Below are positions 9,488 through 55,129 of a stretch of 64,000 nt of DNA, piece by piece (position 1 is the stretch's first letter; every line of letters starts with the position of its first letter). The stretch spans positions 880,944-944,943 of the forward strand of contig NW_003314333.1 of NCBI RefSeq assembly GCF_000143415.4, in the 5' to 3' direction. A program made the position numbers and the translations under genes. Source of the DNA: Selaginella moellendorffii. Taxonomy: Eukaryota > Plantae > Lycopodiophyta. The notes beneath the pieces were generated by a model. It had not been told where the DNA came from. It did no database searches and saw only the letters and a program-made list of their open reading frames with translations.

Positions 9488-9768
9488 TGGAGGGACCTTG
9501 CGCGAATAAGTCAGTGACCCCTCCATCTTTCTTTCGGGAGTATCATCAAGGGGTTCACTCGGCACCAGTTCATCCAGTGTTTACTTTCCAAGCTCGTCTT
9601 TATAACAAGAGGTCTCCTATTATTCTCTCTGTGTTGGTTGATACAGGTTCGAGTTTATCTTCTATTGCTCGACCTGTTGCCACACGTTGTCATCTACACT
9701 TGCGTCGTGCGGCAGAACCAATTTTCATTCTTTATGGCAACGGCCGTACACATGCATGTGCACGGGAT

Positions 9769-10910
9769 TGTAAGCCACAAATTTTTCCTTTCCAATTTGC
9801 CAATTTACCTCGTCTATCCGACCAACTCTGCCTTGGCTTGTGCTAAGTTCCCTCGCCAAGGTTCTCGCCTATGGTACCAGCTCCTACTTGGTCCTACTTG
9901 GTTTTAGCTACTCACTGCACAAGCAATGGAGTGTTAGCCATCCATCTACGGATTCCCAAATCTCTCCCAATCCCCCTCCCCGGGTTAGACTGGACTTAAG
10001 GTTCGGCTACACTCCTCGCAGGCATAAGCAACCAAGCACACCAAGCCTCCAGATTCCTAAAACCCCTTCGTACCACAAGGCTTGATCATGGGACCCTCTA
10101 AATCCCAAGCCTTAGGTGCAGCACTTGCTTCGGGACGTCGGGGCGAAACACCGTGGCCTAATGGCCCGGTATGGGTACCTCTACCCCCCCACTTCCATCC
10201 CGAAGGGAAGGCCCAAGCCCCTAGGAAGGGCAAGGACCAATGAGCCACAAGGTACTTAAGTGGGGCACCACTCCACATGAGCCGGGAGCACCGCAGTCGG
10301 TTTCCCTTTCGAGAGTGGGAGCTGCTCTTGAGCACTTCCCTGGGTGGCCCCTCTGGCACCACTCAAGCCCATGCTCACTCCCACCCAATGCCCCTCGGCC
10401 CCAGTCTCAACCTCAAGTCGGTTTGGAAGCACCACTGGAGAGTTCCTTCAAGACTGGTTCCTGGACCTCACTATCCCTACTATACTTTTGGAACCCCCTG
10501 CAGCCCCCCCCCGGGAGACACACGCTTTGGGCTTTCACCCCTTGAGCTGCATTAGTATGTGGACTTAGTCTCAGAATCGATCTCGGACTCGATCTCGGAC
10601 CCGACTTCGGACTCAGTCTCGGACTCGATCTCGGACTCGATCTCGGACCCGATCTTGGACTCAACTTCGGACTCGACCTTGGACTCGGTCTCGGACCCGA
10701 TTTGGATCTCGAACTCCGTCTTGAACTCGGTCTCGATCTCGGTCTCCTATTCGGCCTCGGCTTGATCCCGGACTCTATCTCGAACTCGGTCTCAGAGTCG
10801 GTCTTGGATTCGATCTTCGACTCGGTCCCATCTGATGAACTCTTTGTCATTTCGGTCAAGCTTTCGGGGATCCTTTAGCCTACGACATCTCGGGGAGTCG
10901 GTTCCTTACA
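9769..10910. mobile_element. Solo LTR (1142 bp) of a different family nested in the protease domain
   Basis: TGTAAG...CTTACA termini flanked by GGGAT (9764-9768, 10911-10915). Removal restores GNGRTHACARDEVDLVVRV. Confidence 0.93.
10565..10830. repeat. ~12-bp tandem repeat (ATCTCGGACTCG variants) inside the solo LTR
   Basis: Visible periodic TCTCGGACTCGA units. Confidence 0.9.
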
Positions 10911-13900
10911 GGGATGAGGTAGACCTGGTTGTGCGTGTGGGCGATCTCGAGCTTGAGTTGCAGTCGTTGCAGGTGGTGCTGAGTCAAGCTTTTGACCTCA
11001 TTCTTGGTATGGATTGGTTGCAGCGCAATCATGACAAGTGTGACTTTGAGGCTTCTCCCCCTGGTCTCATACTTCCTTATGTTTCATCTATTCCTCTCAC
11101 TTCTATACCTCTTCGTCCCTCTACTTCTACCTTTTCTTCCATTACTTTTGTTTCCCCACTATTTCCTCCTGTGTTTCCATCTTGTTCTGCTCTTCCCTTT
11201 TCTGATCCCTCCCACGATCTTTGTGTTGCAGCAGTTGACCGGCTCATGAAGGAGTATTCTGATCTCTTTGACTTTGACTTATCGTCTGGAGCCAAGATTG
11301 CCACACGTCATCCGATTCCAACTGGGGCTACTCGTCCAATCAGGTTCCTGTTCGTTGTCGGTCACCAAAGGAGATCAAGATTTTATGTGCAAATGTCAAG
11401 GAGATGTTGGAGAAGGGTGTAATTCGGAAGTCGCAGAGTCCTTGGGCATGTGAACCTCATCTTGTGACGAAGCCTAATGGGAGTATTTGTTTCTGCATCA
11501 ACTATCGTCCATTAAATGACGTAACGATCCCAGATGTGTACCCTCTTCCTCACACTGCTGATCTCTTGGATCGTCTGGGGCGAAGTCGTTGGTTCACCAA
11601 GCTAGATCTTGCTTCTGGGTATTGGCAAGTACCGATGGCCGAAGAAGATATTCCTAAGATTGCTTTTTGTACACCATTTTGTTTGTATGAGTTCTTGGTG
11701 ATGCCATTTGGTTTGAACAATGCTCCAACAACTTTTCAACAGATGATGGACAAGGTTCTTTGCGATATGCCGGAGGTGACTGCTGACTTCATTGATGATG
11801 TCTTGATCCACTCGGAGGGGACGTGGGAGGAGCACATTCATGATGTTTGTAAACTGTTGGATCGGCTACGCGACATTGGTTTAAAGCTGAAACGGTCGAA
11901 GTACATGTTTGGATCCAAGGACACAACTTATCTTGGGTACCGTATTTCTCGTGAGGGTTTGCAAGTTGATCATGACAAACTTGTGGCTGTTCTAAAGTTC
12001 CCTACTCCAAAGTGTGTGAATGATGTGCAGCGCTTCTTGAGCAAGGTGTAGTATCTCGGGTGTTTTGTGGATCATCTTTCTGATTGCACTACACCATTGC
12101 GAGCGTTGCTGAAGTCATCAGCGTCATCTTTCATTTGGTCTCTGGATTGTGAACGGGTGTTTGGGGATCTCAAAGAGTTCTCCGGTTTTGGCATATCCTC
12201 ACTACACTCGACCTTTTATTTTGCGCATGGATGCTTCTGACATTGGTCTTGGAGGTGTGTTAATGCAAGAGAGCTCAAGTGTGCCTGGTCAGCGCCATCC
12301 CATTGCATATATAAGCCATACATTACAACCAGCAGAGATGAACTACTCCACGACAGAGAAGGAGTGTTTAGCAGCAGTCTGGGGTTTCGAGAAACTTCAT
12401 GCATATCTACATGGCTCTCGTACGTTACTTGAAGGTGACCATGCTACTGTTACTTCGTTATTAAAGCGGAAGAACCTGGTTGGTCGTACTGCTCAGTGGG
12501 CTTTGAAGCTTCAGATATATGATTTTGATGTTGTTCACAGCCCAAGAAGTTCTATGGCTGATGCTAATGCCCTTTCTCGAGCTCCTCTTCCTTCTTCACT
12601 CTCTTCTCGTGTTTCTAACGAGCCTGTCGTTCTAGCATCTGTGGATTTTCTAGACGAGGATTCTATGCTGTCGGCAGTTGCTGTACTTGACATTCAATGT
12701 CCACAAGGTGCAGAGCAAGATTTACCTTCGCTTGATGAGGTTCGCGAGGCTCAAAAGATTGAGCCATGGATTTGAAGGCTTCGAGATGGGTTTAAGAATC
12801 CTGCATCACTTGCTGATGACTTGCCTTTTCGGCATTTATATTCTCAACATCGTCTTGAAGATGGCCTTCTTTATTTTGTGGGGATAGATCCTGATGATCA
12901 TTTACGGCTGGTGGTGCCTTCTATCTTTATTCCGCGGTTTCTCCATGCCTACCATGATTCTCCTGTTCTAGGTGGGCATATGGGACATCGTCATGTAATC
13001 GAGAAGCTACGTAGGTCTTTCTATTGGCCGGAGATGCGACGTGATATTATCTGATATGTGCGTAGCTGCATTTGGTGCCAAGCTCGTAATACTCCCCCTC
13101 GGGCTGCAGAAGGACGGTTGGAGTCAATTGCAATTTCCTGTCTGTTTGAGTTGGTGGCGTTTGATATTATGGGACCTTTTCCACGGTCGACTGCTGGCAA
13201 TGAGTATGTTATTATTGCTTCTGACTACTTGACTCGTTGGGTGGAAGTTGGTGCTTTTGCTAGCGCCTCTGCAACTGCTGTTAGATACTTCCTCCTCAAT
13301 CGAGTGGTGTTCCAGCATTCTTGTCCAGAGCGGATTCTTTTGGATAATGGTCCCACATTTATGGCTGAGGCATTTCATGTTTTGACGTCTCGGTTGGGGA
13401 TTCGCCACACTTTCACAAGTGCTTATCATCCACAATCAGACGATCTGGTGGAATGGCTCGTTCGGACAAGGGGATGATTGCGAAGTATGTGAACTTTCAG
13501 CATTCAGATTGGGATGGTTATTTGCCGTCTTTTCGGTATGCATATGTCACTGGGGTGCAGAGTTCTGTTGGTGCTTCACCACATAAACTCCTATATGGTC
13601 ATGATCCAATATTACCAATGGAGCTAGGTTTACCTTCGCGATTGCCACAAGCTGCGGATGCTAGGTTATGGGATCAATATTTGACAAGCATTCTTCCATT
13701 TGTCCAAGCGGAGTCTGCCGAACACTTAGGCCGCGTACAAGTGGGACAACAACGGCATTACAACTCCCATCATCGTCCATCTGCAGAGTACAAAGTGGAT
13801 GATTTGGTGTTAGTCCGTTTTCCCCATCTTACGGTACATGGTTTATCTAAGGGGTTCCTTGCACAGTGGAAAGGACCGTATCGAGTGTTGCGGCAAGTTG

Positions 13901-14939: not shown

Positions 14940-16958
14940 ATGGCGGGGCATGAATCGCGGCGCGGGGGCAGCATCGGCTTGCGTCGGAGCTCGTCAGCGC
15001 ATCATCATCGTGCGGGCGATGCTGCTGGCCCGCATAAGCTGCTTAGAACGGTCAGCCAGAGGTTGAGAGGTCTCATCAGCGGCGAGATCGTTGCCAGTGT
15101 CAATCACGGTAGCGGCAGGCTGTTTTTCGGGCGAGACTTCGATGATGATCGCCCCGGGGCTGCCAGGATCATCCACCAAGAACAGGCAATAATTGATCAT
15201 CACACGGGCAAGTCGAGGCCAGGTTTCTTCCTCAACTTCTCGCTGGGACAGAGATTTCCAGGAAGAACGCTCCAAGAACAGGAAGAGGAAGAGGCCGAGC
15301 TCCCAGAGGAACCAACACCCAGATGCTTTAGCAGGATGAGGAGCAGCCGCCGCGAGAAGCTACTCGCTTCTTCATTAGATCCAAGCGGCAGCGCTAGAAA
15401 TCTGTGCCGGGGATGCTTTGGGTCAACGATCCCTCCGGAAGAGCTGCCGGATTCATCGATGTTTGGACAGGATGATGGCCAGCAGCAGCAGCATTCCATC
15501 GTGCTCCCGGACGACGTTCTCGAGATGTGCTTGGCGAGGCTTCCATTCGATTCCCTGGTCCGAGCTCGCGCGGTGTGCAAGAAGTGGAGTTCCTTGACGC
15601 GCTCCTCGCATTTCTTGCAGCTCCGGGACAGGATGGGCTCCCCCCGGCCATGGCTCTTCGTGCTTGGGCTGTCGAGAGATGGAGTGAGCCTGGGCCAGAT
15701 TCAAGCCTTGGATCCCACTCTCGATCGGTGGCGCTCCATCCGAGCCGACGCACTGGCGGGGCGTTTGCTCTACTCGGTGGCGTCCAGTGGATCCAAGGTC
15801 TTCATGGTCGGGGGCTGCTCGGCGCGGGCCAGCAGCGACAGGGAGAAAGGAGGTTTCCTCAAGACTCACAGGAGCGTTCTCGTGCTGGATGCTTTCACCG
15901 GGCAGTGGAGCAAGGCCGGGATTGGAATGAAGAGCGCGAGGACCACTCCCGTGGTGGGAGTTTTCGAGATGACGCAGGCAATCAAGCTCAACCTCTTCGC
16001 AGCTCCAGAGAAGAAGACCACTAGCACCACCACCGCCACCACCACCAATCACAGGAGGATTGCCAAGAAGCGATCGGCAGAGATTGGTGTCTTCCGGGGA
16101 TCATCGTCCACAGGACCAGGTGGTGGCTCGTCATTCATGGATCAGATCTCTGCGCGACGCTGGCAGCGAAGTTATAGCTTCCGGGAGCTGACGACGAGCT
16201 TGGGATCATCGTCGTCAGCCTCGAAACCATCTGGCAGTAGCGGCAGCGGCAGCGGCAGTGGCAGCAACAGCGCTTTTGGATTGATCGTCATTGGCGGGCA
16301 GGACGAGCGGAACCAGACGCTTTCCAGCGGCGAGGTGTACGACCCATCGTCCAGCTCGTGGAGGGAGATCGCGGCGTGGCCGTGTACGGAGCTTGGATCA
16401 CTGTGCACGGGGGTGGTGTCCAAAGGCGTGCTTTACTGCTACTCGGACAGTGACAAGCTCGCGGCGCTGGATCTTGAGCGAAACTCCTGGCACGAGATCG
16501 CCATCTCGGCCTCGGGCATTCCCTCGCGGATCCAGGACTATCTCCCCAAGCTGGTGGTGTGCAAGGGCCGGATCCTTCTCGTGGGCGTCGTCTGGGCATC
16601 GAGATCACAGCACCAGATCAATGGGTTCGAGCAGCAGCAGCAGCAGCAGCCCAAGGTCGCGAGGAAGATCTGGCGATTGGAGCAGGATCGATCATCCTCC
16701 TGGCGGTGGAGCGAGGTGTCGCAGCACCCGGACGCGCCGCTCGACTGGAACGCGGTGTTCATCGGCCATGGCGACAGGATCTTCGGTGTGGAGATGTTTA
16801 AGATCTTCGGGCAGGTGCTGGATTTCGTGACAGTGTGCCAGTTCGCGGGCTCGCGGCGCAAGCGCGCGAGCTGGGATCGCGCGTCCAAGCAGAGAATGGG
16901 GCAGGACGTGGATTCCTCCTCGTGCCTCACCAAAGCAGCAGTCATCGTCCAGCTATAA
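14940..16958 (+). CDS. F-box/kelch-repeat protein, CFK1/CFK2 (At5g42350)-like, intronless
   Basis: 672-aa ORF with F-box LPDDVLEMCLARLP...VCKKW, kelch repeats (VFMVGG, LIVIGG...GEVYDP) and N-terminal LRTVSQRLR. Confidence 0.9.
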   Translation: MAGHESRRGGSIGLRRSSSAHHHRAGDAAGPHKLLRTVSQRLRGLISGEIVASVNHGSGRLFFGRDFDDDRPGAARIIHQEQAIIDHHTGKSRPGFFLNFSLGQRFPGRTLQEQEEEEAELPEEPTPRCFSRMRSSRREKLLASSLDPSGSARNLCRGCFGSTIPPEELPDSSMFGQDDGQQQQHSIVLPDDVLEMCLARLPFDSLVRARAVCKKWSSLTRSSHFLQLRDRMGSPRPWLFVLGLSRDGVSLGQIQALDPTLDRWRSIRADALAGRLLYSVASSGSKVFMVGGCSARASSDREKGGFLKTHRSVLVLDAFTGQWSKAGIGMKSARTTPVVGVFEMTQAIKLNLFAAPEKKTTSTTTATTTNHRRIAKKRSAEIGVFRGSSSTGPGGGSSFMDQISARRWQRSYSFRELTTSLGSSSSASKPSGSSGSGSGSGSNSAFGLIVIGGQDERNQTLSSGEVYDPSSSSWREIAAWPCTELGSLCTGVVSKGVLYCYSDSDKLAALDLERNSWHEIAISASGIPSRIQDYLPKLVVCKGRILLVGVVWASRSQHQINGFEQQQQQQPKVARKIWRLEQDRSSSWRWSEVSQHPDAPLDWNAVFIGHGDRIFGVEMFKIFGQVLDFVTVCQFAGSRRKRASWDRASKQRMGQDVDSSSCLTKAAVIVQL

Positions 16959-17019
16959 ACCCTAAAAATGCAGAGCTCAAGAACCCTAAAACGCCATAAA
17001 CCCTAAAAACTTTCTGTAT

Positions 17020-18376
17020 TTACAATATTGTGCAGCGCGAGTTCTTCATCTTTTCCTCGAATTCCTTCTCCCTGCGCTTGAATTCCTTCTCGAATCGCTT
17101 GCGCTCCTCCTCGAGCTTGATGCGCTCCTGCTCGAATCGCGCGCGCTCCGACTCGGCGTGCCTGCGCTGCTCCTCGGCACGCTTGCACTGCTCCTCCATT
17201 TTGGCCTCGGCCGCTATCGCGCTGCGCTTGGATTCCTCCGCGAGCTCCCGCAATTTGGCCAGCTCCTCCTCTTGCTCGGCCTTGTCCTTCTCATAGCTCT
17301 CCCGCAGTTCATTGATCTGCCAGTGAAGCGAGAGTTCTCTTAGCGCGCGGTGAGAACGTTTGAAAATATAAAACCTTTTGGGGGAAATTTTGCTCCAGCT
17401 GAGAGAGTCGATTCTCCATGCTCTCTTTCTTCTCTCGTGCTTCTTCTTGAGCCTGGAATCAATCCATTGAAATTTGGGAGGATGCGAGATACGCGAACTC
17501 TTACCTTGGCCAGCTCGAAGATCTCGGTGGTGTAAGGTATGCGGCTGTTGGCAGTGATCATCGTGTCAACAATCTCGAGAAGATCTCTCCGCTGCGCCTC
17601 CAGCTTTCTCTTGTCCTTGGATTTGTTGTCAAACAAAATCTTTCGATCGCCACACCGGTGGAGAAGATCCTGGAAACAAAAGAAGAACACTTTGAAGAAC
17701 ATAGCTGCGAAGGTGAGTACCTTGAGAGCTCCAGGAGTGCCATTCTGCGATAAGAACTCCTCCAGTGACGTTCCATCGCCATCGTCTTCGAGCGCGTCAC
17801 CATTCGTAAAGACGACGACGACGTAGTTCAAGACCCCGGATCCAAACATCTTCTCAAACGCATCCACGGCAGCGAATTCCTCCTCCGTGAACTTCGATTT
17901 GGCCGAGAGCACGAGGAGGATTCCGTGAAGCCCATCGCCAGCCAAATCCATACACTTGCCAATCTCTCTCGCGATCGACTTGGAATCGAGGGCGGTGTCA
18001 AACATCCCTGGAAAGGAGAATCTCTAGCAAAAAAAACTGCAAGCAAATCGCAGGTACCTGGAGTGTCGATGACGCGAATGCGTCGTCCATCGGGCCGTGT
18101 GATCTGCCCAAGCTCGCACACGCGCGTCACGGAGCCAAGGGACATCCTGGAGTTGAATCTCTTGCCGCCGAGGATGGAATTCCCTGTGGCGCTCTTGCCA
18201 CTGCCGGTTTTGCCCACTAGCACAAGCGTGGTGCTGCTAGAATCGCGAGGAGAGATTACCTCGGTGCCGCTCTTGGCAGCCTTGTAATCGGAGAAAGCCA
18301 TGCGATCGCTGCGAATCGGGGCGTCGTAGTCGCTGCCGCCGTTGCTGGGAACGTCTTCCCAGTCGCTAAGATCCAT
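17020..18376 (-). CDS. AIG1/IAN (GIMAP-family) GTPase with C-terminal coiled coil and CaaX (CTIL)
   Basis: [24 protein letters not shown]|[16 protein letters not shown] across short introns; ends RCTIL*. Confidence 0.93.
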
Positions 18377-18496
18377 CGTCCTTCCCTGACCTAAAAGGAA
18401 AGATCCTTACAAACAAGCTAAATTTGCAAATGGTTATGAAAATCGAAAGGGAATTCTCTACGATAGAGTTGTCATTTTCGGAAGCTCTTGCTCGAC

Positions 18497-19603
18497 TCAC
18501 AAATCTAATAATCTCTTTGTGCATGTGTCAGGGAATTGGAAGTTATTGAGATCCAGGCATAACACATCAACAAGAAGAAAAAAAGATGAAAGCGGATTAG
18601 CAGCTGACATGTGAAGATCTCTGTCTTTACATTTTGAAGAAATTGGAAGTATTGCATAGAACGAAGTCAACAAGAACTTAAGAGCTCCACTTAAAGGCCT
18701 GGAAAACCATTTGTCTGGATGGTAGACTCTCTCTTTTTCTTCGAACAAAGCACCACCATTACTTTCTTCGATCTCAGGATGGGAAACGGTTGGTCGGATC
18801 TGCCACTTGACATTTTCCACAAGATCTTCGAGCTGAGCCTTCAAGCGGAACTTGCTGGCATTGTCTAGTTTGTAAGTCGTGGAGGAGCAACACTTCGAGG
18901 CGCTGCTTTCAACGACTTAACATCTTCTGGCCGCTTCCTGGGCTAGAAGCGAAGCTCTGCAGCAAGCACAAGCGACAGCTCTTGCACTGCGACTGCATCC
19001 ATCTCCGCACTGATATCTCGTCTCCAAGAGGTCCACACTCTCAAGCTCCACAGCGTCCACAAGGCCTTGCAAGCTTCCAAGCTGACAGACTCCGCCTGGA
19101 TTAACATGACAAGCTCGGCGCGAGAGTTGGACCTCGTCCCGTGAACTTCCGAGTCTTGGAGCACATCAACCTCGAATCACTCAAGATCAAGTGCTTGCCA
19201 GTCATGGCACCGGACAGTGATGAGATTACTCCCGAGGCTCGGGGTGTTGTCTTGAGCAAGCTCCACACGCTGGCAATGGAAAGCTCAAGACCATCAAGCT
19301 TGTCATGCAAGGCCGCCACAGCTGGAAGCTTGCGATACTTTGCTCTTTATGTCGGAGCAAGGTCGTGGTGGTGGCCCGGGGATAGCAAAACTCGAGCACA
19401 CGAAAGGTGGTGGTAGACTCGCTCAAGCGGGTGGTGCTGTGGCCGGACTTTGGTGAGACTTTCTCGGAGTCCGGGAAGTTGTACAGCCTCTTCTCGACAA
19501 TGTCGCTGTGGAGGAGCGTGTTGTCCAAGCTAGTCGAACGTTTTTTCTTTTCACCCAGACCCAAAACTTGGCGAATTATATCTCGATCGCGTTTCACATT
19601 CAA
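18497..19603 (-). pseudogene. Fragmented coding-like region of unknown function (contains a YHPDK motif)
   Basis: Chain of short overlapping minus-strand ORFs with coding-like composition. Frame changes are not explained by obvious introns. Confidence 0.3.
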
Positions 19604-41516: not shown

Positions 41517-44500
41517 AAACCTGTGAGTTACTACAACTTTTACATATTTTTATTGTTTCAAGTGGCCAACAGCTTTTAGAGGCGGCGATCTTAGCACACC
41601 GAATTGGAGATCACTGACGTTAAGCCTTGATTGCTGCCATAAGTTAATCCATATGTGCATAGTACTTGCTACTTGCTATAAACGATTTGCTATGCTCATT
41701 GTTAGAAATAGTATATAAAAACCACCAGACAATTCTGTGGGCAATACATGGCATCTTTAAATTGGACAGTGCCTGCGCAGAGACACAACTGATTTACTTT
41801 ACATTCAAGCTATCAAACGGAACATTTCAGTCTCTATCAACTTTGGCCGAATGAAGTTAACGTGGATTGTTGGGGTCGCAAGCAGAGCCATGCTGTGAGG
41901 GATTGACGATAAGGTTTCTCTTCTTTGAATATTTCCATGTCCACACGTTATGAAGAGGATATTGTCGTTTAAAAGCGAGCTTCATCGATCTGCTTGATTA
42001 TTTTTTTCTTCTTTTTCCACTTCGAAGAATGTCAGAAACAGAAGCATTGCTGCTGATGGTATGCTTCTTACTTGCTCACGCAGCAGCAGATCTCAATGAG
42101 GAGATGAGAGATTTTCTCCGAGACGTGAATCCTCCGTTTGTCATAAATCATACGGTTTGTTTTTTCGTTTTCAGATCCTTGTGAACAGTTATCAAATCGA
42201 GACATCATCCTCTGCGTCCCAATTAAAAATCAACTGTCTCTAAGAAACCAGACACTGCAGCTTCGGGTAAGTTGTCCAACATGGATGAAAACTAATGATT
42301 TCTCGTCTAGCCTGCTCAAATGATGAGCAAACAAGAGCACAATGGATCAGAAAATTCCGGTCAGCTGTTTGGTTTAGAAGTTGGATCGTGCAAGGAAAAC
42401 ACAATACCGGTGTTGCACACTTCGAATACCATAGTCGCAAGATTTGATTCTGTGAGGAAGCTAACCAAAAAACATTCCTCTGGAAAAAATCGAGTGCCAT
42501 TGGCTGATGAAGAACCTGGCGTAGAAACTCATGAGGTACTACAGTAATCTAGCAGGATCTGATCAAAACTCTCAAGAGTTGACAATACTTTGCATGATCA
42601 CGACAGCATGGCTACAACCAGTTGAACGGCAACTTCCAAGGGATGGAAACAACTATAAATGTTTGGGAGCCATACGTGGAACAAACTTCCGAGTTCAGTC
42701 TGTTGCAGTTGTGGATTATCTCAAACAAATTAGGCCCAGGTACTCCATAACACCATCCTTGCCACAGTGAAGCAGGATGGCAGGTGTGTTGAAATTTAGA
42801 TGTTTCTATACTGAACCTTGCTTGAAGGTTTATCCTAATTACTATGGAGGAACTGGGCCTCGACTCTTTGTCTACTGGACGGTAAATCAGATTGGTAATA
42901 AAACCTTTTATAAGCGTTGTCAATGGCAGGCTGATGGCTACAGAAATCAAGAAACTAGGAAAAATATCACAAGCAATCTCTCATGCTAGTAATCTCCATC
43001 AACACATTGTGACTGGACTCATGCTTAAGGATTAGCATGAGGCCTTATGCTAAAGTGCTAAAAAGATTTTGATTTGTCTAGTTTCTTGATGGTAATCTTG
43101 CTCAAATGTCTGTCCATGGGACAAGTAATATTATTATCAAGGAATTGGCAAAAACACCCCATCCATTCCTAAGTGTGAGGCTTTATGCTAATAACCTCCT
43201 ATAGAATTACCTCCACTGCCCCTTTCTTACGAGTCCTCATGCTATTAACCTCCTATAGAATTACTTCCATTACCCCTTTCACTTAGCATGAGGCCTTACA
43301 CTAGGATCCATTCTCTCCCATTTCAAAAATATTTTAAGTAATTCTAATAAGTTCTTTCATGTTTCTAGGCCTAACAATCTAAAACACTTCTACATGAGTC
43401 CATCAAAGTGAAAAGAGGCTGCAACTCCACATAACCACAAAAGTGGACATTAGAGATACAAGATGATGATCTAGTGTTGGTGGATCTTACCAACCCAAAT
43501 AGTCCAATAGTCTATGGGATTGTCATCAAAGAAGAGGAGATTCTTAACAAAGACATGAACAAGGAAGGAGGGCCATTTATACAGAGCTTCAAAAGACATT
43601 CATCAGGAATATTGTTCAAGACTCAGAGTTTATTCTGTCAACTACAATATAGTTTGCAAAGAAGGAATTGATACAACCTTCATTGCTTATGGAATCCTCA
43701 AGGACAGACTAACTTTGTCAAGAGCATTGTTGTTGTGGATAGTCAACAATAGGATTCTAATTGAGAGACTTTTTGATTAGAGGGAAATAGAAAAATTGGA
43801 GCATCCATTCCATGACCTCTCCAACTACAATCCAAATGATAAACATAATGTCAATCAGGTTGTTGATGATAAACATACATTAAGCAATACATCCTCATTA
43901 ACATCAACGTCCAATGATTAGGAGAGTGAGGATGATGAAGACAAGGTACAACACAATGATAATGAAGAGGATAATAGTGAGACAAAAAGTGACAAGTGAT
44001 AAAATTCAAGACAAGAGTCCTTCCTCATCATGAAAAGAAGAAGAAAATGATGATGAACCACCACAGAAGAGGATTAGATGTAAACTTTGGAGCAAGGTTG
44101 CAAGCAATAATGCATGGACGAGCCAAGGACAAAAACCTCCATACAAAGCAAGAAAAAAAAGTGTCACACAATAAATAAACCAAAAGATGGTAGAAATGAA
44201 GGCTCCAAAAAGAAGAGCAAAAGGGTGAAATGATGACAGCACAATTACAATAATAGGGGTGAAAAAAAAGACTAATGTCGACAAGACACCCTTGTTGAAG
44301 TACAAGCACTACTACTTCAATGATCAAACAATCTACAAACTCCTAATGTCTTGGTGCATCATTGATGCAACTCTTTGTTCACAATACCCTCAAAGAGCTA
44401 ATGATTGTATAAGAGAACTCAATGGATCTAGGTGATGCAATCCCAATCACTATGGACAAGGATGGTTAGACATTTGTCGAAAGGATAGGCAAGGAAACAA

Positions 44501-44741
44501 CAAAAAATCCAACAGTCAAATTCATTGTCATGTCTAGGCGGCACTTGACAAAAGCAATGCAAGAGATCTCTTTTGATCTAATATACACGAAGAAGATGCA
44601 GGCAAAATTCTCAATATGATACTTCTAAATCATGAAGGGGTCAACACCACAGGATACCATTATTGAGATATCCAATCTTGTGAACCAGCATAAGAGTAGC
44701 CTCAATGACAATCTTGTACATAGTCGCCACAACTAGAAGAG

Positions 44742-45897
44742 TGTAAGTGACTAATTTTTCCATTCTACTTTAGTTATTTAACCACACCTTTGACCACTTG
44801 GAGGAGTCTTATTCACAACCTCCATAAGTTCAATTCAGAATTTGGGATTTGCTAGATCCAAGAATGGCATCTATGCTACTTAACTTTTGGACTTGGTCCA
44901 AGTGCTTCACATGTTTGATCCCATGATCAACACCCCAAGGTACCACCAACATATTAGCCCGTTACGCTAAGGCCATGCTTATTCACTTTGGTCACATTGG
45001 TGGTCCAACACTACTTGCATCGCAGTCCCATCTCTCAAAGACTGGGCCATCTGTCTATGAAAGACCATCTAAGATCCATTCCCTAGTATCCCACTACCAC
45101 TGGAACAAAGCCCACAAGCCCGACCACTAAGTTCCACTGTCCTTTGGGACTTCCTTACCACATGACCATATCCTTGGTCACTACACTAAAGGACCATTCC
45201 TCTTCCTTTCCATAGTCTAGGACTTTAGGACAATATTTTGGAACATCATGGCCTTATGTAAGCCTCATGGGTACTCTCCCCACTTTCTGCCTTTGGGTGC
45301 TCTAACTATGGGCTTAGAGTGAGGTTCCGTTTAGCCACGCCAGATATCCAAGTAGGTAGTGCCACCCACGCTTGGACTGGGAGCATCAACCATTCAATCT
45401 CCCGGGGGAACTAAAGCCGGCTCTTGAACACTTTACCAAGTTACCCCCCTTATCAATTTGTATTCACTTTAGCTTTGGACTTCCCAGTGGTTATCTCATC
45501 ACCCAACAGCTCAGACACCATCTCGGGTCCATCTCGGACTCCATCTCAGGTCCATCTTAGACTCCATCTCAGGTCCATCTCGGGTCCATCTCGAACTCCA
45601 TCTCAGACTCTATCTTGGGTCCATCTTGGACTCTATCTTAGGTCCATCTCGGACTCCTTCTTGGACACTTTCATATATCATGTGTTGGTCCTCTTGTGTC
45701 CCTTTTCTAGAGACTCCTTTATTGCTCACTTCATGCTTGTTCTTCAAACACTTCGTTGGGAGTTCCACTCCCACTCTCGACCTTTCAAGTTGGAGTTTTT
45801 AGTCCAAACATGTTATGCATATTTGGCTTTCGCTTTAGCCACTACCACATGGCACACTTTTGGCTCCATTTTGGGGCTTAGGGATTTGTGTCTCACA
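44742..45897. mobile_element. LTR-like segment related to the solo LTR at 9769-10910
   Basis: TGTAAG start with a similar following sequence, ends TCTCACA, similar length (~1156 bp), same CATCTCGGACTC-type tandem array at ~45515-45660. No TSD found. Confidence 0.6.
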
Positions 45898-46692
45898 ACT
45901 CTACCACCCATAGATGAATTTCGATGTCTTCATCGAATGATAAATTATTTTATAAAGTAATACTAGTATGTATTACCCTTTCCATCCTTGGCACCTAGCC
46001 AATATTCGTCAATTGTTTGACACTGAAGGCTCATTATGCCTTGTCCATCCTCCAAAAAGCATAATCTCTCTAACATAAAGACTCGATCGACCACCTATGG
46101 TGGTTCTCTCCCTTTCATTGGTTTAGTTTTTACTAAATCTATTTGAGATGCTTCCTCTATCTCAATCCCATTACTTATTCTTGAATAGTCTCAACTTCTA
46201 TTGATATAACCATTTCACTTTAGAACTTTTGACAAAAATTCAACAGTCAAAAAGGAAACTTTGTTACATCCATAGATGTAGTTTAATATGCCAACTATAA
46301 AAGCAAGAAATCTAAAAGATATCAATCAAATGAAGTACCTACATGGCTGCTTGTAAATAATCAAATAGAAGAGAAGGAAATGTTTTAAGAGAGACACCTA
46401 AGCTCAGGCTAAATACATATATATGGATTTACTATATATGACTATACCTGAATTTAAAATAACTGAAATAATAATAATTATGCCTTTTTAAACTAAATTT
46501 CTTAAATAAACTTAAATATGGATTGTTGTGCACTCAACGTCGTCAACACATTATCTATGCCGTTTCCCTTACTGTCACCAATAGAGAATCCAGTCACCTA
46601 CCAAAGGAAAACCAGAATCGTAAGACTCCCTTTGTATCAAAGTCTAGCTGAATCGCACTTGGAAAGCCTCCTTTACCACTAAATACTAGTGA

Positions 46693-49371
46693 TCACATCT
46701 TTCTCGTACACTTTTTGGTATGCCTTACAGCTGCAATCTGCTCGATCATACCAAAATTGGAGCCGATAATAACACTTGAGGCATATATATCCATCGGATT
46801 AGACTTTTGATATGAGAGAGCTGATGAATTGTCCTTGTCCGAGAAAAATACATATCCAAAGTTCGTTCGAGCATACTCTACAAAAAACAAAAATTAAAAA
46901 TAAACGAAAAATGTATAACGTATGGACTTACTTTCATCGCCAGGCTGCTCATTGTCCTTGATAGCAATCAGTCGTCGGACGTCACTCTTAAGATTTCGAA
47001 CGACTTCCGACCAATCCGCAATGGCTGGCTTAAGAGGGTCTCCAGAGCACTTGCTTTGGATGTACAAAAGAAATGGCTCCAAATCAATGCCTTTTACTTC
47101 CTCGAGTATCAGGAAGGTATCAGCCCCGCTGTTCCGAGGTCCACAGATGGCCCAAGTCCCTGACCTTTGAACCTCCTCCTTTGAGCCTGGACTACTGTGT
47201 TTGATCCGAAACCAAAAAACTAAAAACAAGAACATACCTGGACTTAGTTGCTTGATTGAAACTGGAAAAGTGGGGAACCTGAACTTTCGGTTCTTCAGAT
47301 TGTCAGGGATGTACCAATCGCAAGGCAACACATCCGCCAGCATGAAGGTGTCTGAACCCCCCGATAGTAACTGCAAATAACATGTTAGTAACCGAGACTA
47401 TGAAAGACTATGAACGTAGAATTCACATACCTTATGAATGTAGATGCTGAAGATCAGAGACAACAAATCGTTGTCTTCCTTCTGCTTCCAATCATCCGTT
47501 GACATTGTTGTCAAATCAAAAGTTGTAGAGCCAAAAAGGTCCTCCCGCTGGAGTGTTAGCTTATGCAGTAACACAGGTGAAAACTCCACCAGAGCCTTTT
47601 CTTCGTCAAGAACCACAGCCACTACTCCACAACTCTCCAGAGCTTCCCATGTCAAAACATTCTCTCTTGGAAAGGCCTGCAGCAGAATCGGTCCATTCCT
47701 TGAGACATGCTCACGAAGCATCGATGCTTGAATTGCTCGTAAGAGATAAGAAAATCTCTCATCCCCGGCAAAGCCATTGTAATACTTGAATCTTCTGCAT
47801 AGGCTCCACACACGATCCAGAATCTGCCTTACTTTGTCTCTCAGGAAGGGCTCCTGAATTCTCAGCGCAAGGTTGTCAATGTCAAGGGCCATGTCTGGGT
47901 CATCTGAAGCCAAAGCCTGAACCATGAAGGTAATCAACCTCGGATTCCCTCCGCTCAGCTTGCACAACAGCTGCATGCCATCATTTAAAGCATGAAGTTC
48001 TTCACGGTTTGAAGTCCTCAGCACCTTGTTAAAGACTTGCAACACCAGCTTCTCCCGATCGCTGCTGCTGAGAGGGTTGACAGGAATATAAATCACTTCA
48101 GATGATCCACTGTCACCGCTCTCTCTCAAAGATGCCGCTGTGAAAAGGTTGGTCGCTCCGAGCATAGTGACGAACGTTTTGCCACCCACGTTCCTGTACT
48201 TCCAAACTATGAACTGCCGAAACAGTTTCTGAACAAGGACGTTGCTCCTCCCAATCTCATCAAAGAAGAACGACAGGAAAATGTTTTGGTCTCCGAGCTC
48301 GCAGACTTCTCGCAACAAAGCTATCACGTCATCAAACAGGAGGAACTTCTTCAAATCAGGTGCTTCGGTATCAACAACAGCGACAAGCTCTTGGTAAGGA
48401 AAGCGCGTCCAAGTCCCAGTATCTTTTCTGATGTCATCTTGGCCATCTGCTCTAGAAACAGCTGCATGCAAAGTCCTCAGGGCCAAAACCTGAGCATCAC
48501 CCAGCCCGGCCTCGCCATGAAAAGTTGAAATAAAATCATGGTACATGAGCACGTCGAGATGTTCAACGGTGCTCATCATGGCATCCCACGGTCGCACCTC
48601 ATCGGTTGATGTATCGAAAAGTGAGGCAAGTTCTTGAATCCTTAGCCCTGGATCACTCCGTTGCCTTCTCATCTCAATGAGTATTTGTGGGAGTGCCTTG
48701 CCAAGGGATGTTTTTCCCGCACCCGGGAATCCAACCACACCCATTATATGGTGGAGGCGCCTAAACACATCCCAGTCTGTGTGTTGACTGCTCATGAATT
48801 GCTTGTACAACAGCCAGTTACCCCTGAGCAAAGCATCCACAGTCTTCTCTCGTCCAACAATGGGAAACTGCTGCCCGATGTCCTTCAGAGACAAGCCAGT
48901 TGGCAAAGAAGATAATGAATCCCTTTCAAGGCATTTTCTGTACGTGCGGGCATGCTTAAGACGAGGTCCAAAGAGCTCCTTCAGCTTGGCAATCCGATCA
49001 CGGGCGTTTGACCAAACAACTCCACTAGAGGGAATGAGCTGCTGACGGAGCTGCTTCTCCTTCTCCATCCAGTGCTTCTGAAGCTCACGGAGCTGCTTCT
49101 CCTTCTCCATCCAGTGCTTCTCCTTCTCCATCCAGTGCTTCTGAAGCTCACCCTGCGTGGAATCCACCTTCTGGCCAGCGCGCTCCACCTTCTGCTCAAC
49201 CTGCTCAATCGCTTGTTGCACGGCCCTGATCTCCGATTCCACTTCCTCAATCTGCTGCTGAATCGATCGCTCAGGCCCATCCGCCCTTTGCCGCTTCCCA
49301 GCCCTGATATCTGATTCCAATTCTTCCCCATCCGCCCTTGGCCGCTTCCCATGAGACTGCTCTCGCACCAT
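46693..49371 (-). CDS. Crinkler/CR-type protein: N-terminal repeats/coiled coil + STAND/AAA+-like NTPase + PD-(D/E)XK REase domain; about four exons
   Basis: 657-aa first ORF with FPIVGRE, Walker A GFPGAGKT, Walker B FLSFFFDE and GGNPRL. Downstream exons give NSGAD...LLYIQSK nuclease motif. Last-exon splice site is uncertain. Confidence 0.75.
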
Positions 49372-49559
49372 GGCGGAACCCTAACCGAGGTACTCTGATT
49401 TTTAGGGTTCTAGCCGTAGAATGGGACATTGTGCGAGGCGAGCTTCGACTGCATTCGATGTGAGGTTGGTAGAAAACACCTGAAACTGGCATTGAGGTAT
49501 GTTCAGCTGAATCTGTGAAATGGTGTAGACCTTACTGATTTTACCTGCATTCGGGCAGG

Positions 49560-51270
49560 TAAACTGGAGTAGGTTCACGTAGAAAAGAACTAATGTTGAC
49601 TACTCATTCAGAGCGGCAGTGAGTATATGGCAGGACAGCTTCAGGCTTATGGCCATCTCGGACTCTCCTCAGAGAGCTGATCTTTGGCTGATCAACACGT
49701 AAGTTCAGTATCAGAAGGAAGAATCTTAAGCTGGATCAATTGTTGCTGCTGTTTTATTCGCAGGTGTACTGTGAAAGCTCCGACAATGGGAACACTGATA
49801 CGTAAAGGCAAAGCAGCCTCTATTCCCTTGGTGGATAGCTGGATGCGTTCCTCAGGGTTTAAAAGATCTCGAAGCTGTCAGCGTCATCGGAGTGCAGTAA
49901 ATACAGCGGGGGAGACTTTGAAAGGCCACGAGGCCCGGCTGCTTCGACGGGATGCTTTACCGTCTCTTGATTTGCCAAAAGTTTATAATCTCTTTTGCTG
50001 TTGTGTTTTCAGGTTCGTAAGAACAAGTTTGTCGAGATCATTCCTATCAACGTTGGCTGCTTGGGTGCTTGCACATACTGCAAGACGAAGCATGCTCGCG
50101 GGCATCTTGGCAGCTACACAGTAGACACACCAGTAAGGACCTTCGCCAGTTTCTTTTCTCTGTTACTGAGCTTTATCTACAGGTGCAAAGATTGAAAACC
50201 GTGGTGTCTGAAGGTGTGAAGGAGATATGGCGACACTGGAGCTTACGGTTATGGCTATCTGTTTCAAGCTAGCATTTTTTATTTACTTTTTTCTTTCTTT
50301 GCACTACAGGACGAGACATTGGAGCAAATATACCAGCGCTTCTACGTGCTTTAGTTGCCGTGCTTCCTCATAGACAGAAGTACAATGCTCCGAATCTACA
50401 TCTTACAGCATCTGGAGGAAATGGCTGTCACCCCTGCGTGTATTCGTTCCTTCATGTTCTGGTTCAATCTGGAAGGGACTCGGTGTTGGAGGTACCGATG
50501 TTATGGGTGATTGTTTTGTCTCTGTAAGCTGTTTTCTGTGTTCTTCAGGGCATGAAGAGGGAGTACACGTTTTCCGAGTTTAGAAAAATTGTGGATACTC
50601 TCACAAGACTAGTCCCAGAGATTCATATCGCTACAGATATTATCTGTGGATTTCCAGGTACACTCGCATGCACGAAAAAGATTGTATCTTATTGAGCTTT
50701 TATCCTTGTCAGGGGAAACATCAGAGGATTTTGACAGGATCATGGAACTAATACGAGAGTGCACGTTCCCACAGGTCCACATATCACAGTTTTACCCTCG
50801 ACCAGGTAGGTAATCTCTGTACATGCTACTGAATGGTTCTCTCTGTCACTAGTGTTTATCCTGTCAATATCCTTAGACAGGAACACCGGCGGCTCTAATG
50901 AAACGGGTTCCAACGCTCGAAGTGAAGAAACGAAGCCGTTCCTTGACAAGTCTGTTCGAATCGTTCACTCCTTACGCAGGAATGGAGAAAACGTACCGAG
51001 TCTGGGTCACCAACACTGCTGCTGATGGAATTCATCTGGTATTCTTTCTTTTGTTCTACGTCTCTGCAGGTTGGCCTGTGTACAAGTTCTACTTCCAGCT
51101 GTACCGGGCCTTCTTGGAAGCAAGTTAATGTGAAGATTACGTCTGTCGGAAGATGGTCTGTGACTGGCGAGTGGCGAACCAGATTCCACTCCTGGAGACG
51201 ATGCTGAGAAAGTCGGATGCGAGCAGCGGTAAGGAATGCGATCCTCGGGGAGTTCCTGAGAAAGAGATCC
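49560..51270 (+). pseudogene. CDKAL1/MtaB-type radical-SAM tRNA methylthiotransferase pseudogene (introns retained)
   Basis: [38 protein letters not shown] (CxxxCxxC), [32 protein letters not shown]; frameshifts and deletions. Confidence 0.88.
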
Positions 51271-51439
51271 CGAGTTCGGGCATCACATTTTCGTTTGTTG
51301 AAATTCACCAGGATCAGAAGCGGCAGGCTCTGTGGTCACTCTTGTGGCTTTCTTTACACACTCCAGAAGAAAACAAGCTCAAGGACGAGTCTGTGCAACG
51401 CTCGCACAAACTCGACTGGGCGCAATTGGGAGCTCCAAC

Positions 51440-52010
51440 CAGAGTCCAATCTCCGCTATCCCAGATGAGGTGTCTTTACGTCAATGACGGTGAGAGACTT
51501 ATCTTCATCAAGACAAGTTTGCAAGCACTGGTACGCTCTGTGTTCATCAGACTGTCTGTGGGAGAAATTCGTCGGCTCAGGTCAAGCCAACTTACCAAGG
51601 TACGTGCCTCCTGACTATACTATTTTCTGGAAATTTTGTTTTCCTTGCTTAAACGTTGAATTTTGCAGATGGCTGGTGCATAAGCACAGCACGCTACTGT
51701 CGTCTCGAAGCACTCGCGTTTTATATTTCACAAACAGATACACGTTTCTGATTCAAGCCTTGGATGCATGGTGGGAATACGGGATTTACAGCTCCTCTAA
51801 GCTGTGTCCTCTTATATGAGAGCTTACGCTGCGCGACTGGTGTGTATTCTATGAAGTGCTAAGCTCCGCTTTTGCGAATCGTGCAGATTTCCTATCTGCC
51901 TCACTTCTGCCAAAGCTTCACAGCAGATTGAATCTGTACGACCTGGAAGGTGTGTGTTTGGATGACGGAGTCACTGGGATGAAAATCTGGAAGGTGCTGC
52001 GTGACCTCTG
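51440..52010 (+). pseudogene. F-box gene fragment
   Basis: MTVRDLSSSRQVCKHWYALCSSDCLWEK F-box-like motif followed by a disrupted frame. Confidence 0.5.
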
Positions 52011-52105
52011 ACAGCGTTATATCTCATGGGTGAAAGTTTGCCTGCACTGCTCGGACCTTAATTATGCAGTCCGACGGTAAGTGGCATTCACGCTGGCTGT
52101 TGGAT

Positions 52106-53835
52106 CCTCCACCGTTGGATTGTACAGATTTAACAGCTCAAACGCTCAGCCTTTGAGTTGCCAGAAATTTCTAAGTCCTAGCACTTGGTTTTTGGCAATG
52201 GAGAGGAAGGTACGTGAGCATGGCAGTTACACCTTGAGCACGCCACGGCCAAGGTCACCACAGCCAGCTGCTCCAGCAGCAGCAGCAGCCGCCGATGCAG
52301 GCAGCGCCAGCCACTGCAACAGCCCGCGGCCTGCCAACACCAGCAGCTGCTGCGGCTGCTGCTCCAGCCGGCCAGCCAGCCGTGCCACGGCCGGCCTCCA
52401 GCGACCGCCACAGCGAGCACTTGGGCCAGCACTCGCCGCCCAAAGCGCCAGCCCTGTGGCTCGTCGTGGCCCAGCCCGTTAGCACTGCGTCCCGGCCAGC
52501 CGCTGCCCAGCAGCACCACCCCGAGGCAGCAACCACCAAGGGATCTCCAAAAATGCTAAGGGGATTGCTCCCTGCTGTTGAGAGCACCCGCACCACCCAG
52601 ACATCACCACAAAGCTGCTATGATCCACCAGAATCTGCCGTGGGAGACACAATTGCAACCGCAATTGCAAATGCCCGCCTCTGCTTCTCCAGCATCCTCT
52701 CCACCGTCAGATCTCCCGATCCAACGGTCCACGTGGTCCAAGCCTGAATCGTACTTAGATTTTTTCTGGGCTATGGAGGAGAAAGATGCAAGGAGCAGTC
52801 ACGACAGGGCATTCTGTCTTGACCACGCCACAACATCAAGCCAACAGCAAGCCAGGACAACTCCAAGCATGGTTCTGGATTCAGAGAAACCAGCCATGCT
52901 GCCCCTCTCTCCCCTCGCCAGGGTCTGACACAGCAAGTCTCCAAGCCAGGCATTTGCATTGGCCCCTGTGTGCCGCACCTCGCTGCCACAGTGCCACAAA
53001 AAATCCCTACCTGGAGATGCTCACTGCCACTAAGAGTCTGGGAATTAGCTTGGCTTCTCAACACAACAATCTCTTTGGTGTTTCCTGCGGCCCAGCTCCC
53101 CTGAATCGTGTCTGGCACAGCAAACTCCCCACAAAGGCTTTTTGCCCCCTTTTGGTCCAGTGCCTTGGCACCACCAAGAGATCATAAAAATGCCAAGGGA
53201 GCTGCTCCCTGCCACACAGACGCACCTCGCTGCCACAGTGCCACAAAAAATCCCTGCCTGGAGATGCTCACTGCCACTAAGAGTCCGGGAATTAGCTTGG
53301 CTTCTCAACACAACAATCTCTTTGGTGTTTCCTGCGGCCCAGCTCCCCTGAATTGTGTCTGGCACAGCAAACTCCCCACAAAGGCTTTTTGCCCCCTTTT
53401 GGTCCAGTGCCTTGGCACCACCAAGAGATCATAAAAATGCCAAGGGAGCTGCTCCCTGCCACACAAAGCACCCACACCACCCAGAGATCACCATAGAAAT
53501 GCTGTGCCTCACCAAAATCCGCCATGGGAGAAGCCTTTGCAACAGCAACAGCCATTGCAAAGGCCCACTCATGCTTCCCTCTCCTCTCTCCTCCACCGTC
53601 GGATCGCACAGATCCAACGGCTCAAACGCACAGCCTTTGAGTTGCCAATAATTTATAAGTCCTAGCACTTAGTTTTTTGGCAATGGTAGAGGAAGCTATG
53701 GGAGCATGGCCACTGCGTCTTGAGCACGCCATGGCCCAGGCCACCATAGCCAGCTGCTCTAGCAGTAGCAGCTGCTGACACAGGCAGCGCTAGCCATTGC
53801 AACAGCCTGCAGCTTGCTAGCACCAGCAGCTACTG
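52106..53835. repeat. GC-rich repeat block: ~240-bp direct repeats (52106-52350, 53590-53835) enclosing a 247-bp near-perfect tandem duplication (52975-53221, 53222-53466)
   Basis: Identical short ORFs offset by 247 bp (53108/53355); shared CTCCACCGT...CAGCCTTTGAGTTGCCA...AAGTCCTAGCACTT segments. Confidence 0.88.
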
Positions 53836-55129
53836 CATTGTGGGAGTGATTGAGGCGAGGAAGAGGGACGTCACCAGCTGCATTGGTCCTCCACTTGCTT
53901 CGCTGGAGTGACTATAGCAAAGGATGAGCTCTTTTTCTCTCTCACGGCTTGGTTTTCACTCTTTTTCTCGTTTCGACTTCATGGCTAACACAATCTTATT
54001 CACTTATGCAATAAACATGGATGCAAAGGAGATTGGTGTCGAAAAACTAGGCTAGAGGAAGTGGGTGGGCTTTTTTTCTTGGTGTGAGGCCTCACACTAA
54101 TGTTTTTGTGTGAGGTTGGACACTATCTATTTGTAGATTGGATTAAGGTATTATGGAGGGATGAAGTCATTTTCTTGGCATGAGGCCTCATGCTATTCAT
54201 TTATATGCATTTGTTTCTTACTACTTTAGGTGTCTAGGTGAGTAATCTTACTCGCCAATTCATGGCTGCTATAACCTGCACTGCGAAGGCTTTGTACAAA
54301 CAAGCAACAAGTACATACTAGGAGGATCATTTTCGAGCGTATCCACTCCAGACTCTACACAATATGAGAAAACCTTACATGTTTTCCAGGTCCATAGTCC
54401 AGACTATGTAAAAAACATGCATAAAAGCTATTAAATGGTTTTGAATTTTTCAGGACGATAGCTCAAAGAATTGGTGGCTACAAATTGACGGGGAAAGTAT
54501 TGGATACTGGCCTGCAAGCCTTTTTCAATCTCTACAGAATGGTGCTGAGACATTGGAAGCTGGCGGTGAAGTCTGCTATGATAAAGAAAGTGGAGTAAGA
54601 CACACAAAGACTGGTATGGGAAGTGGAGAATTTCCATCCCAGGGATATCTTAAAGCTGCATACCAGAGAAGAATATAGTACCTGGATTCCAATGGAGTAA
54701 TGCAGCCAGCAATTGGGATGAAAAGTGGAGCTGAAGTACCTAAATGCTACACTGCTACTAGTGTTGCTGCTGACAAGGGAGATGACTGGGGTGCATATTT
54801 CTTCTTTGGAGGCCCTGGATATAGCAACCAGTGCCCATAAACCTTCAATGAATGACAAAAGGCAAAAAAGTTTATAACCTGAAATAAAAATATTAACAGA
54901 TTTTATGACATTTTGAGAACAAGCAAGAAAATATAAAAGGATGTAGTCCCGCTTTTAGATCAAGACAATCTGAAAAATTCTCCATCAAGAAAGGGCATTC
55001 CAGCTCCAGGCCTCTACCACCGAACTATACTAATGCCGCTCAATCAATGCTACAACATAATAAATTAGTACCTGAATCCAAGCAAAAGGTCATTAATTTG
55101 CTCTATCCTTAACATCTTCGGGTCATGCC

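Follow-up and report, generated by a model that had tools for sequence, protein, structure and literature searches.

Crinkler-type modules that combine an ATPase with a nuclease are known chiefly from the effectors of pathogens, and a gene that appears to encode such a module in a free-living plant raises the question of what role these proteins have there. Here, we examine such a gene in the spikemoss Selaginella moellendorffii. It lies on the minus strand of a 64,000-nucleotide stretch of contig NW_003314333.1 (assembly GCF_000143415.4, positions 880,944 to 944,943 of the forward strand), at 46693..49371. We call the whole stretch the window, and all positions are in its numbering unless another locus is named. 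The gene sits within an insertion that splits a neprosin exon, and an initial annotation made from the DNA letters had proposed that it is either the enzyme that mobilizes this insertion or a cargo gene under selection. We think it likely that the gene is an intact copy of a recently amplified Selaginella family of CR-class (Crinkler/RHS-type) nucleoside triphosphatase (NTPase)-nucleases, and that it is a passenger in a composite insertion.

Gene structure and predicted domains

From ATG to stop, the gene runs through four exons (49371-47431, 47370-47238, 47186-46932 and 46877-46693, minus strand), whose 2514-nt coding sequence specifies 837 amino acids (aa) without an internal stop. A minus-strand open reading frame (ORF) of 657 aa, 49371-47398, is extended by splicing across three GT-AG introns, which are 60, 51 and 54 nt long. 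The gene corresponds to GenBank EFJ12803.1 (SELMODRAFT_425221), which is annotated as hypothetical and mapped to GL377637.1:919445-938314. The spliced product is 100% identical to that protein (P0028) over 827 aa, and its nearest proteins are all from S. moellendorffii. Pfam searches with the ORF, the exons and the relatives returned P-loop and coiled-coil noise alone. Every motif listed in the initial annotation is present in the intact product: IVGRE at residues 171-175, GFPGAGKT at 214-221, FFFDE at 368-372, GGNPR at 474-478, GPRNSGAD at 707-714 and LLYIQSK at 731-737. The order of parts that it proposed, a coiled coil followed by a P-loop NTPase and a restriction endonuclease (REase), agrees with these motifs and with models of the domains.

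The middle module, residues 126-590 (47602..48996, minus strand), is by its motifs and structure model an AAA+/STAND-type ATPase with a helical lid and a probable winged helix. Its motifs comprise IVGRE, the Walker A lysine K220, the Walker B residues D371/E372, LGATN and a GxP-like GGNPR; the succession hVGRE...GxxGxGKT...hhhhDE...GGNPR is one that we take to be the STAND/AAA_16/ORC-like pattern. The predicted structure of residues 125-600 (mean predicted local distance difference test score, pLDDT, 68) was closest among solved structures to the NB-ARC domain of ZAR1 (Z 10.4), followed by archaeal Orc1/Cdc6 (Z 9.6-9.7). Further matches were to other ORC, RFC and AAA+ proteins, to TnsC (Z 8.5 and 7.6) and to PF01637-type archaeal ATPases (2qen and 2fna, Z 7.5-8.4, with 2qen at 8.4). 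Sequence searches of the PDB, run both with the protein alone and with two profiles, found P-loop matches only. The region around residues 540-600, where a CR protein would have its helix-turn-helix or winged-helix domain between NTPase and REase, is helical and poorly modeled (pLDDT 35-60), and the ORC/Cdc6 alignments extend into it. A plant NLR (NB-ARC-LRR) receptor was considered and rejected, as the protein has no Pfam NB-ARC or LRR match and resembles ZAR1 at the level of the fold only.

Among predicted structures in the ESM Atlas, the nearest to the NTPase was a cluster named "Crinkler family protein" (TM 0.61 over 370 residues), which has 483 members, 45% of them with Pfam Crinkler; a red-algal "Archaeal ATPase" cluster was also among the nearest models. 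A feature search ranked unnamed red-algal and Mucoromycota clusters at 0.99 and Crinkler clusters at 0.95. Prokaryotic ATPase_2 clusters with additional Hjc or Mrr_cat domains scored below the Crinkler clusters, and an RHSP-bearing cluster, at 0.84, is a lead only.

Residues 591-837 (46696..47601, minus strand, over all four exons) are predicted from alignment and a structure model to form a PD-(D/E)xK, or REase-fold, domain. The AlphaFold model was built on residues 585-839 of a 97%-identical paralogue (P0003) and has a pLDDT of 61.6 and a predicted TM score (pTM) of 0.63. Its elements follow the order helix 46-67, strands 120-124, 133-141 and 144-155, helix 168-187 and strand 201-207, which gives an alpha-beta-beta-beta-alpha-beta core with conserved residues at the canonical PD-(D/E)xK positions. 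The candidate catalytic residues are E632 and D635 on helix 1, D714 at the start of strand 2, and Q735-S-K737 on strand 3. Consistent with this, the E and D are invariant in alignment A3, and E-x-x-D on the helix, N-x-G-x-D and (Q/E)-S-K are conserved. In an exhaustive VIA-align search, nearly all of the top 35 rows were REase-fold nucleases (Z 5.0-6.3), including the Avs3 nuclease domain and PaqCI (joint top, Z 6.3), N.BspD6I, Can2, Card1, FokI, MspJI, Cap4 and NgoMIV. A Foldseek search of the same model against the PDB found nothing at E<=0.001, most of its weak matches being to nucleases of the REase fold. In the ESM Atlas, the model was closest to a Mucoromycota "Crinkler family protein (Fragment)" cluster (TM 0.66 over 221 residues), with prokaryotic PD-(D/E)xK families next. 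The initial annotation had named a C terminus that does not model as this fold as the result that would count against it; both the core topology and the top matches are of the REase type. Nuclease activity would follow if the domain is catalytically competent.

The N-terminal header, residues 1-125 (48997..49371, minus strand), consists of basic patches and a coiled coil, with weak coiled-coil-type Pfam matches only. The patches, KRPR at residues 9-12 and KRQR at 26-29, precede the coiled coil and are putative equivalents of nuclear localization signals (NLS). A Pfam search of the header matched neither a ubiquitin-like domain nor Pfam Crinkler (PF20147). The coiled coil is the most variable part of the protein, with amino-acid-variable codons at 22% compared to 8% in the enzymatic domains. 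An in-frame repeat with units of 21-42 nt (HWMEKEKQLRELQK) lies within it at 49041-49142; the copy number of this repeat varies among paralogues, with in-frame indels of 6-39 nt.

Relation to the Crinkler/RHS class

A full HMMER (phmmer) scan of 1.84 billion representative proteins gave 13 matches. Among them are divergent Selaginella paralogues with 25-34% identity; the others are one protein of the fern Adiantum, three of Klebsormidium, one MMETSP protist transcript and one environmental eukaryote cluster. Across alignments A1-A4, hVGRE, Walker A, Walker B, the ATT/ATN strand, IPhxPL, GGNPR and W..LE..G are conserved, and the catalytic-position residues and Walker motifs are kept even in the paralogues of 25-30% identity and in Klebsormidium. 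Upstream of its NTPase region, one of the Klebsormidium proteins shows a ubiquitin-family match in Pfam that is weak and below threshold.

We consider it quite likely that the family belongs to the CR class of NTPase-helix-turn-helix-REase proteins. No sequence profile link to any named Crinkler or RHS protein was obtained, and the assignment is made because of the architecture and the nearest neighbors at the level of structure. As in CR proteins, a P-loop NTPase is followed by a predicted REase-fold domain behind a variable N-terminal header, the family has undergone lineage-specific expansion in repeat-rich DNA, and Crinkler-labeled clusters are the nearest predicted structures for each of the two domains separately. 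CR proteins have been reported from land plants and green algae, and the class carries variable headers (PMC5289972, which summarizes Zhang et al. 2016, NAR 44:3513; PMC12957317). These headers are reported to be either ubiquitin-like with LxLFLAK or one of several alpha-helical types (PMC5289972). The alpha-helical coiled coil of the spikemoss protein may be a header of the latter kind.

The spikemoss protein also differs from CR proteins. Its header has an NLS-like region and a coiled coil instead of a ubiquitin-like domain or LxLFLAK, it lacks a Pfam Crinkler or RHSP match, and its nuclease motif is Q-x-K rather than (D/E)-x-K. Unlike the CR effectors of pathogens, which are secreted, it is encoded by an endogenous plant gene with introns. 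Other NTPases offer further comparisons. The protein shares with STAND and ORC/Cdc6-type NTPases the hVGRE before Walker A, the hhhhDE Walker B, the GxP-like GGNPR and the helical lid, and with the prokaryotic Avs STAND-nuclease proteins a nuclease domain whose joint-top solved match is that of Avs3. In contrast to STAND, NB-ARC and Avs proteins, however, it has no C-terminal sensor repeats (LRR, TPR or WD40), and its nuclease is C-terminal to the ATPase, not N-terminal.

We infer a nuclear location, ATP gating, nuclease activity and a biological role for the protein as follows. The NLS-like patches would direct it to the nucleus, and the coiled coil of variable length would serve as header and oligomerization module. 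The STAND-like ATPase would be a nucleotide-dependent switch, with ATP binding or hydrolysis, together with oligomerization, licensing the nuclease; the helical or winged-helix linker and the REase part would then bind and cut DNA. The protein may act in genomic conflict, either in host defense, as prokaryotic Avs proteins do, or as a selfish toxin.

Copies, transcription and selection

The family comprises at least 15 near-identical GenBank gene models on 8 or more scaffolds (a 90% cluster and its neighbors). The count is of GenBank models, RefSeq-only paralogues not having been placed on contigs, and the assembly may include allelic copies among them. We compared seven copies: that of the window, one each at loci L001, L002, L003 and L005, and two at L004. 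A core block of ~4.4 kb (45857..50244), which consists of the gene with flanks of about 0.85 kb (downstream) and about 0.87 kb (upstream), is common to six of the seven in blastn comparisons of L001-L005 with the window; the L005 copy stops at 46324. L001 shares 44345-53645 with the window and L005 shares 46324-53594. The two L004 copies share only about 45.6-50.24 kb and are accompanied by a 4.3-kb insertion that is absent from the window.

This 4.3-kb insertion lies upstream of the gene at L002:4870-9135, L003:4793-9132 and L004:5312-9126; its site corresponds to window 50239-50244, and L001 and L005, like the window, lack it. The two L004 copies (10001-12658 and 16746-19403) stand tail to tail in an inverted duplication that spans at least 7 kb, and they hardly differ in coding sequence (dS, the synonymous divergence, 0.002), which points to a very recent duplication or to gene conversion. 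Just downstream of the gene, a minisatellite with a 23-nt period (45507-45661) marks the homology break between several copies. Elsewhere in the window, an unrelated repeat at 9767-10910 has copies of 88-92% identity in L004 and L005 and is probably a dispersed transposable element.

In RNA contigs from four runs of four studies, exactly 46878-46931, 47186/7-47236 and 47371-47430 are skipped, with GT..AG on the minus strand. All three introns predicted in the initial annotation are thus represented by joints in the contigs of the four studies, and therefore the predicted splicing is real and the family is transcribed.

Pairwise dS among the seven copies ranges from 0.002 to 0.045, and the ratio of non-synonymous to synonymous divergence (dN/dS) from 0.43 to 1.14, with a mean of about 0.7. 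None of the 135 segregating changes is a stop codon, compared to 6.15 expected if the copies were neutral (P=0.002), and the coding indels are all multiples of three, except for one of 14 nt before an alternative start codon in the L001 copy. Of the changes private to the window copy, 4 are synonymous and 6 are non-synonymous; the repeat region holds three of the latter. These data support selection that keeps the reading frame open, with weak or mixed constraint on single residues. The suggestion that the gene may be under selection is therefore backed as far as retention of an open frame is concerned; the dN/dS comparison that the initial annotation had called for indicates little beyond weak constraint.

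Several observations weigh against reading the gene as an intact member of a CR-class NTPase-nuclease family. Confidence in both domain models is middling (pLDDT 62 and 68), and Z-scores of 5-6.3 for the REase are under the trust level of 8 stated for the tool. Where the nuclease motif should have its middle acidic residue, this protein has Q and some paralogues have E (E-S-K), and catalytic competence is therefore uncertain. Named Crinkler or RHS proteins are absent from the 13 phmmer matches among 1.84 billion proteins, Pfam Crinkler (PF20147) and RHSP (PF07999) give no match, and word-indexed searches, for which alignment A2 and the protist relative P0011 served as queries, yielded nothing beyond close paralogues or the query itself. 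A mean dN/dS of about 0.7 means only weak constraint, and L002 and L003, which are largely collinear, may be alleles, in which case the independent copies number fewer than seven. At ten positions (46701, 46974, 47245, 47688, 47825, 47992, 48110, 48172, 48369 and 49175), moreover, the RNA contigs have the base shared by other paralogues and not the private base of the window copy, so the contigs show expression of the family rather than of the window copy in particular; contigs drop minor variants, and the mismatch is thus compatible with expression of the window copy as well.

One interpretation of these last points is that the gene is a young duplicate drifting toward a pseudogene, intact because it is recent and without current function. 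A dN/dS of 0.8-1.1 in several pairs, the absence of the window copy's private alleles from the RNA contigs and the Q in place of an acidic residue in the nuclease motif would all fit such a duplicate. However, drift does not readily accommodate 0 stops in 135 changes where 6.15 are expected (P=0.002), coding indels that stay in frame, catalytic-position and Walker residues kept in paralogues of 25-30% identity and in Klebsormidium, or a family that is transcribed and correctly spliced in four studies. We regard it as unlikely.

The composite insertion and its cargo

The insertion occupies 42947..54259. The sequences on either side of it, at 42946 and 54260, can be joined without loss of frame and align to positions 26-53 and 53-94 of the Pfam Neprosin profile, so the insertion into a neprosin exon is real. 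An 8-bp direct repeat, TCATGGCT, at 53979-53986 and 54260-54267 flanks a 273-bp unit (53987-54259), and the body of the insertion (42950-53978) is flanked by TCA (42947-42949 and 53979-53981). From this arrangement, it is probably the product of two nested insertions, the body and the 273-bp unit, which would explain the non-matching ends of the 11.3-kb element. The left 144 bp form a foldback, a palindrome (GCATGAGGCCTCATGC) is subterminal at both ends, and the insertion also holds internal repeats. We considered a Helitron, as the insertion begins with TC, preceded by an A, and a hairpin (54239-54256) lies just inside its 3' end. However, no CTRR is present at this end, and nested cut-and-paste insertions account better for the direct repeats of 8 and 3 bp.

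The gene is the only long ORF of the insertion, as the initial annotation held: none of the other ORFs in 42.9-54.3 kb exceeds 178 aa, and no transposase-like ORF or transposase-type Pfam match was found inside the insertion. The accompanying statement that all neighboring cargo is decayed holds in part. A CDKAL1-like radical-SAM sequence at 49649-52747 (plus strand), co-duplicated with the gene in most copies, lacks its N-terminal part; its ORFs shift frame near 50.4 kb, between the EEMA and HPCVY motifs, and the GMTNPP motif is missing, yet GenBank models the sequence as a 686-aa gene. An F-box-like fragment at 51484-51570 (plus strand; Pfam E 4e-7) appears to be a captured piece of a gene. 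RNA contigs at 49139-49700 on the plus strand, with a joint at 49494/49610 (GT..AG on the plus strand), overlap the first 230 nt of the coding sequence and may represent a transcript, antisense or divergent, that extends into the radical-SAM fragment.

The two terminal sequences of the insertion (42947-43350 and 53987-54259) stand beside only three of the seven gene copies, those of the window, L002 and L003; L001, both L004 copies and L005 have neither terminus within 10 kb. L002 and L003 share the body to exactly window 42946, and there the body is inverted relative to the 273-bp unit. At L002:16640-17020 and L003:15796-16496, the inverted body adjoins the 273-bp unit and the flank begins TCAT. 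A head-to-tail junction or a simple internal deletion was rejected as the origin of this arrangement because the orientations do not fit. Thus, the boundaries that the initial annotation took to be defined recur at a minority of copies and in a different arrangement, and the comparison of paralogues that it proposed shows shared blocks that end at differing points. Because the termini accompany only three of seven copies and the block ends differ, we take the gene to be cargo, carried passively by block duplications that are heterogeneous. We propose that it would have been copied together with the truncated radical-SAM fragment by block duplications of differing extent, and that one copy of the block would have come to sit in the composite, non-autonomous insertion that broke the neprosin exon.

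The idea that the gene encodes the mobilizing enzyme of the element has several points in its favor. It would act as a TnsC/TnsA-like pair that cuts out or pastes in its own insertion; the gene is the sole long intact ORF there, the AAA+ module resembles TnsC (Z 7.6-8.5), and both terminal sequences of the window recur at L002 and L003. In addition, an origin of the CR NTPase-REase modules from genes of prokaryotic transposons has been reported (PMC5289972, summarizing Zhang et al. 2016). The likeness to TnsC is, however, generic to AAA+ proteins, with ORC and NB-ARC scoring higher. Four of the seven copies (L001, both of L004 and L005) have neither terminus within 10 kb and the block ends differ, L002 and L003 have the body in the opposite orientation to the 273-bp end, the insertion is apparently two nested elements with different target duplications, and it contains no integrase or DDE partner. 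We find a mobilizing role highly improbable, and by the reasoning of the initial annotation itself, under which paralogues without these termini imply cargo, the gene is a passenger. An autonomous DNA transposon with the gene as its transposase was likewise rejected, given termini at three of seven copies, their rearrangement and the lack of a transposase. Nor does the locus provide the direct test of a transposon origin that had been expected of it, since the gene is passive cargo and that idea concerns an ancient prokaryotic ancestry; the locus has no bearing on the ancient transposon origin of the CR module.

Alternatively, the gene could be a selfish hitch-hiker whose activity promotes its own spread on neighboring non-autonomous elements, as reported for AACRNL, a Crinkler-like teleost gene embedded in non-autonomous hAT elements (PMC12957317). 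No precedent comes closer than this fish gene to a Crinkler-like gene that travels within non-autonomous elements. Like AACRNL, the spikemoss gene is a Crinkler-like gene of a free-living eukaryote, without a pathogen header, multiplied in transposon-rich DNA and found inside a non-autonomous insertion (PMC12957317). In contrast to the spikemoss protein, AACRNL carries an ADP-ribosyltransferase domain and not an NTPase-REase module, and its copies are accompanied by flanking hAT inverted repeats, whereas the spikemoss termini occur at a minority of copies only (PMC12957317). Beyond this precedent, recent amplification (dS 0.002-0.045, at least 15 gene models on 8 or more scaffolds), the residence of copies in repeat-rich blocks with captured gene fragments and the breaking of a neprosin gene by one copy are in keeping with a hitch-hiker. 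However, we saw no sign that the protein affects transposition, the element ends are not common to the copies, and tandem and inverted duplications, as in L004, account for much of the copy number; an active hitch-hiker therefore seems unlikely.

A more speculative version, to which we give very little credence, is that the ~4.4-kb core is itself a self-propagating unit, in which the ATPase-nuclease makes or targets breaks that copy its own block into new sites, including other mobile elements. If true, the unit would exemplify, in a plant, a selfish gene of Crinkler-class descent that is driven by its nuclease.

With the gene read as a passenger in the composite insertion, the spikemoss family offers a tractable case in which to study CR proteins in a free-living plant. 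It is intact, spliced and transcribed, its amplification is recent (dS about 0.03) and selection keeps its reading frames open; in addition, the insertion around one copy, which destroyed a neprosin exon, is datable. With this family, one could ask whether plant CR proteins are ATP-gated nuclear nucleases, and whether they serve the host or only themselves.

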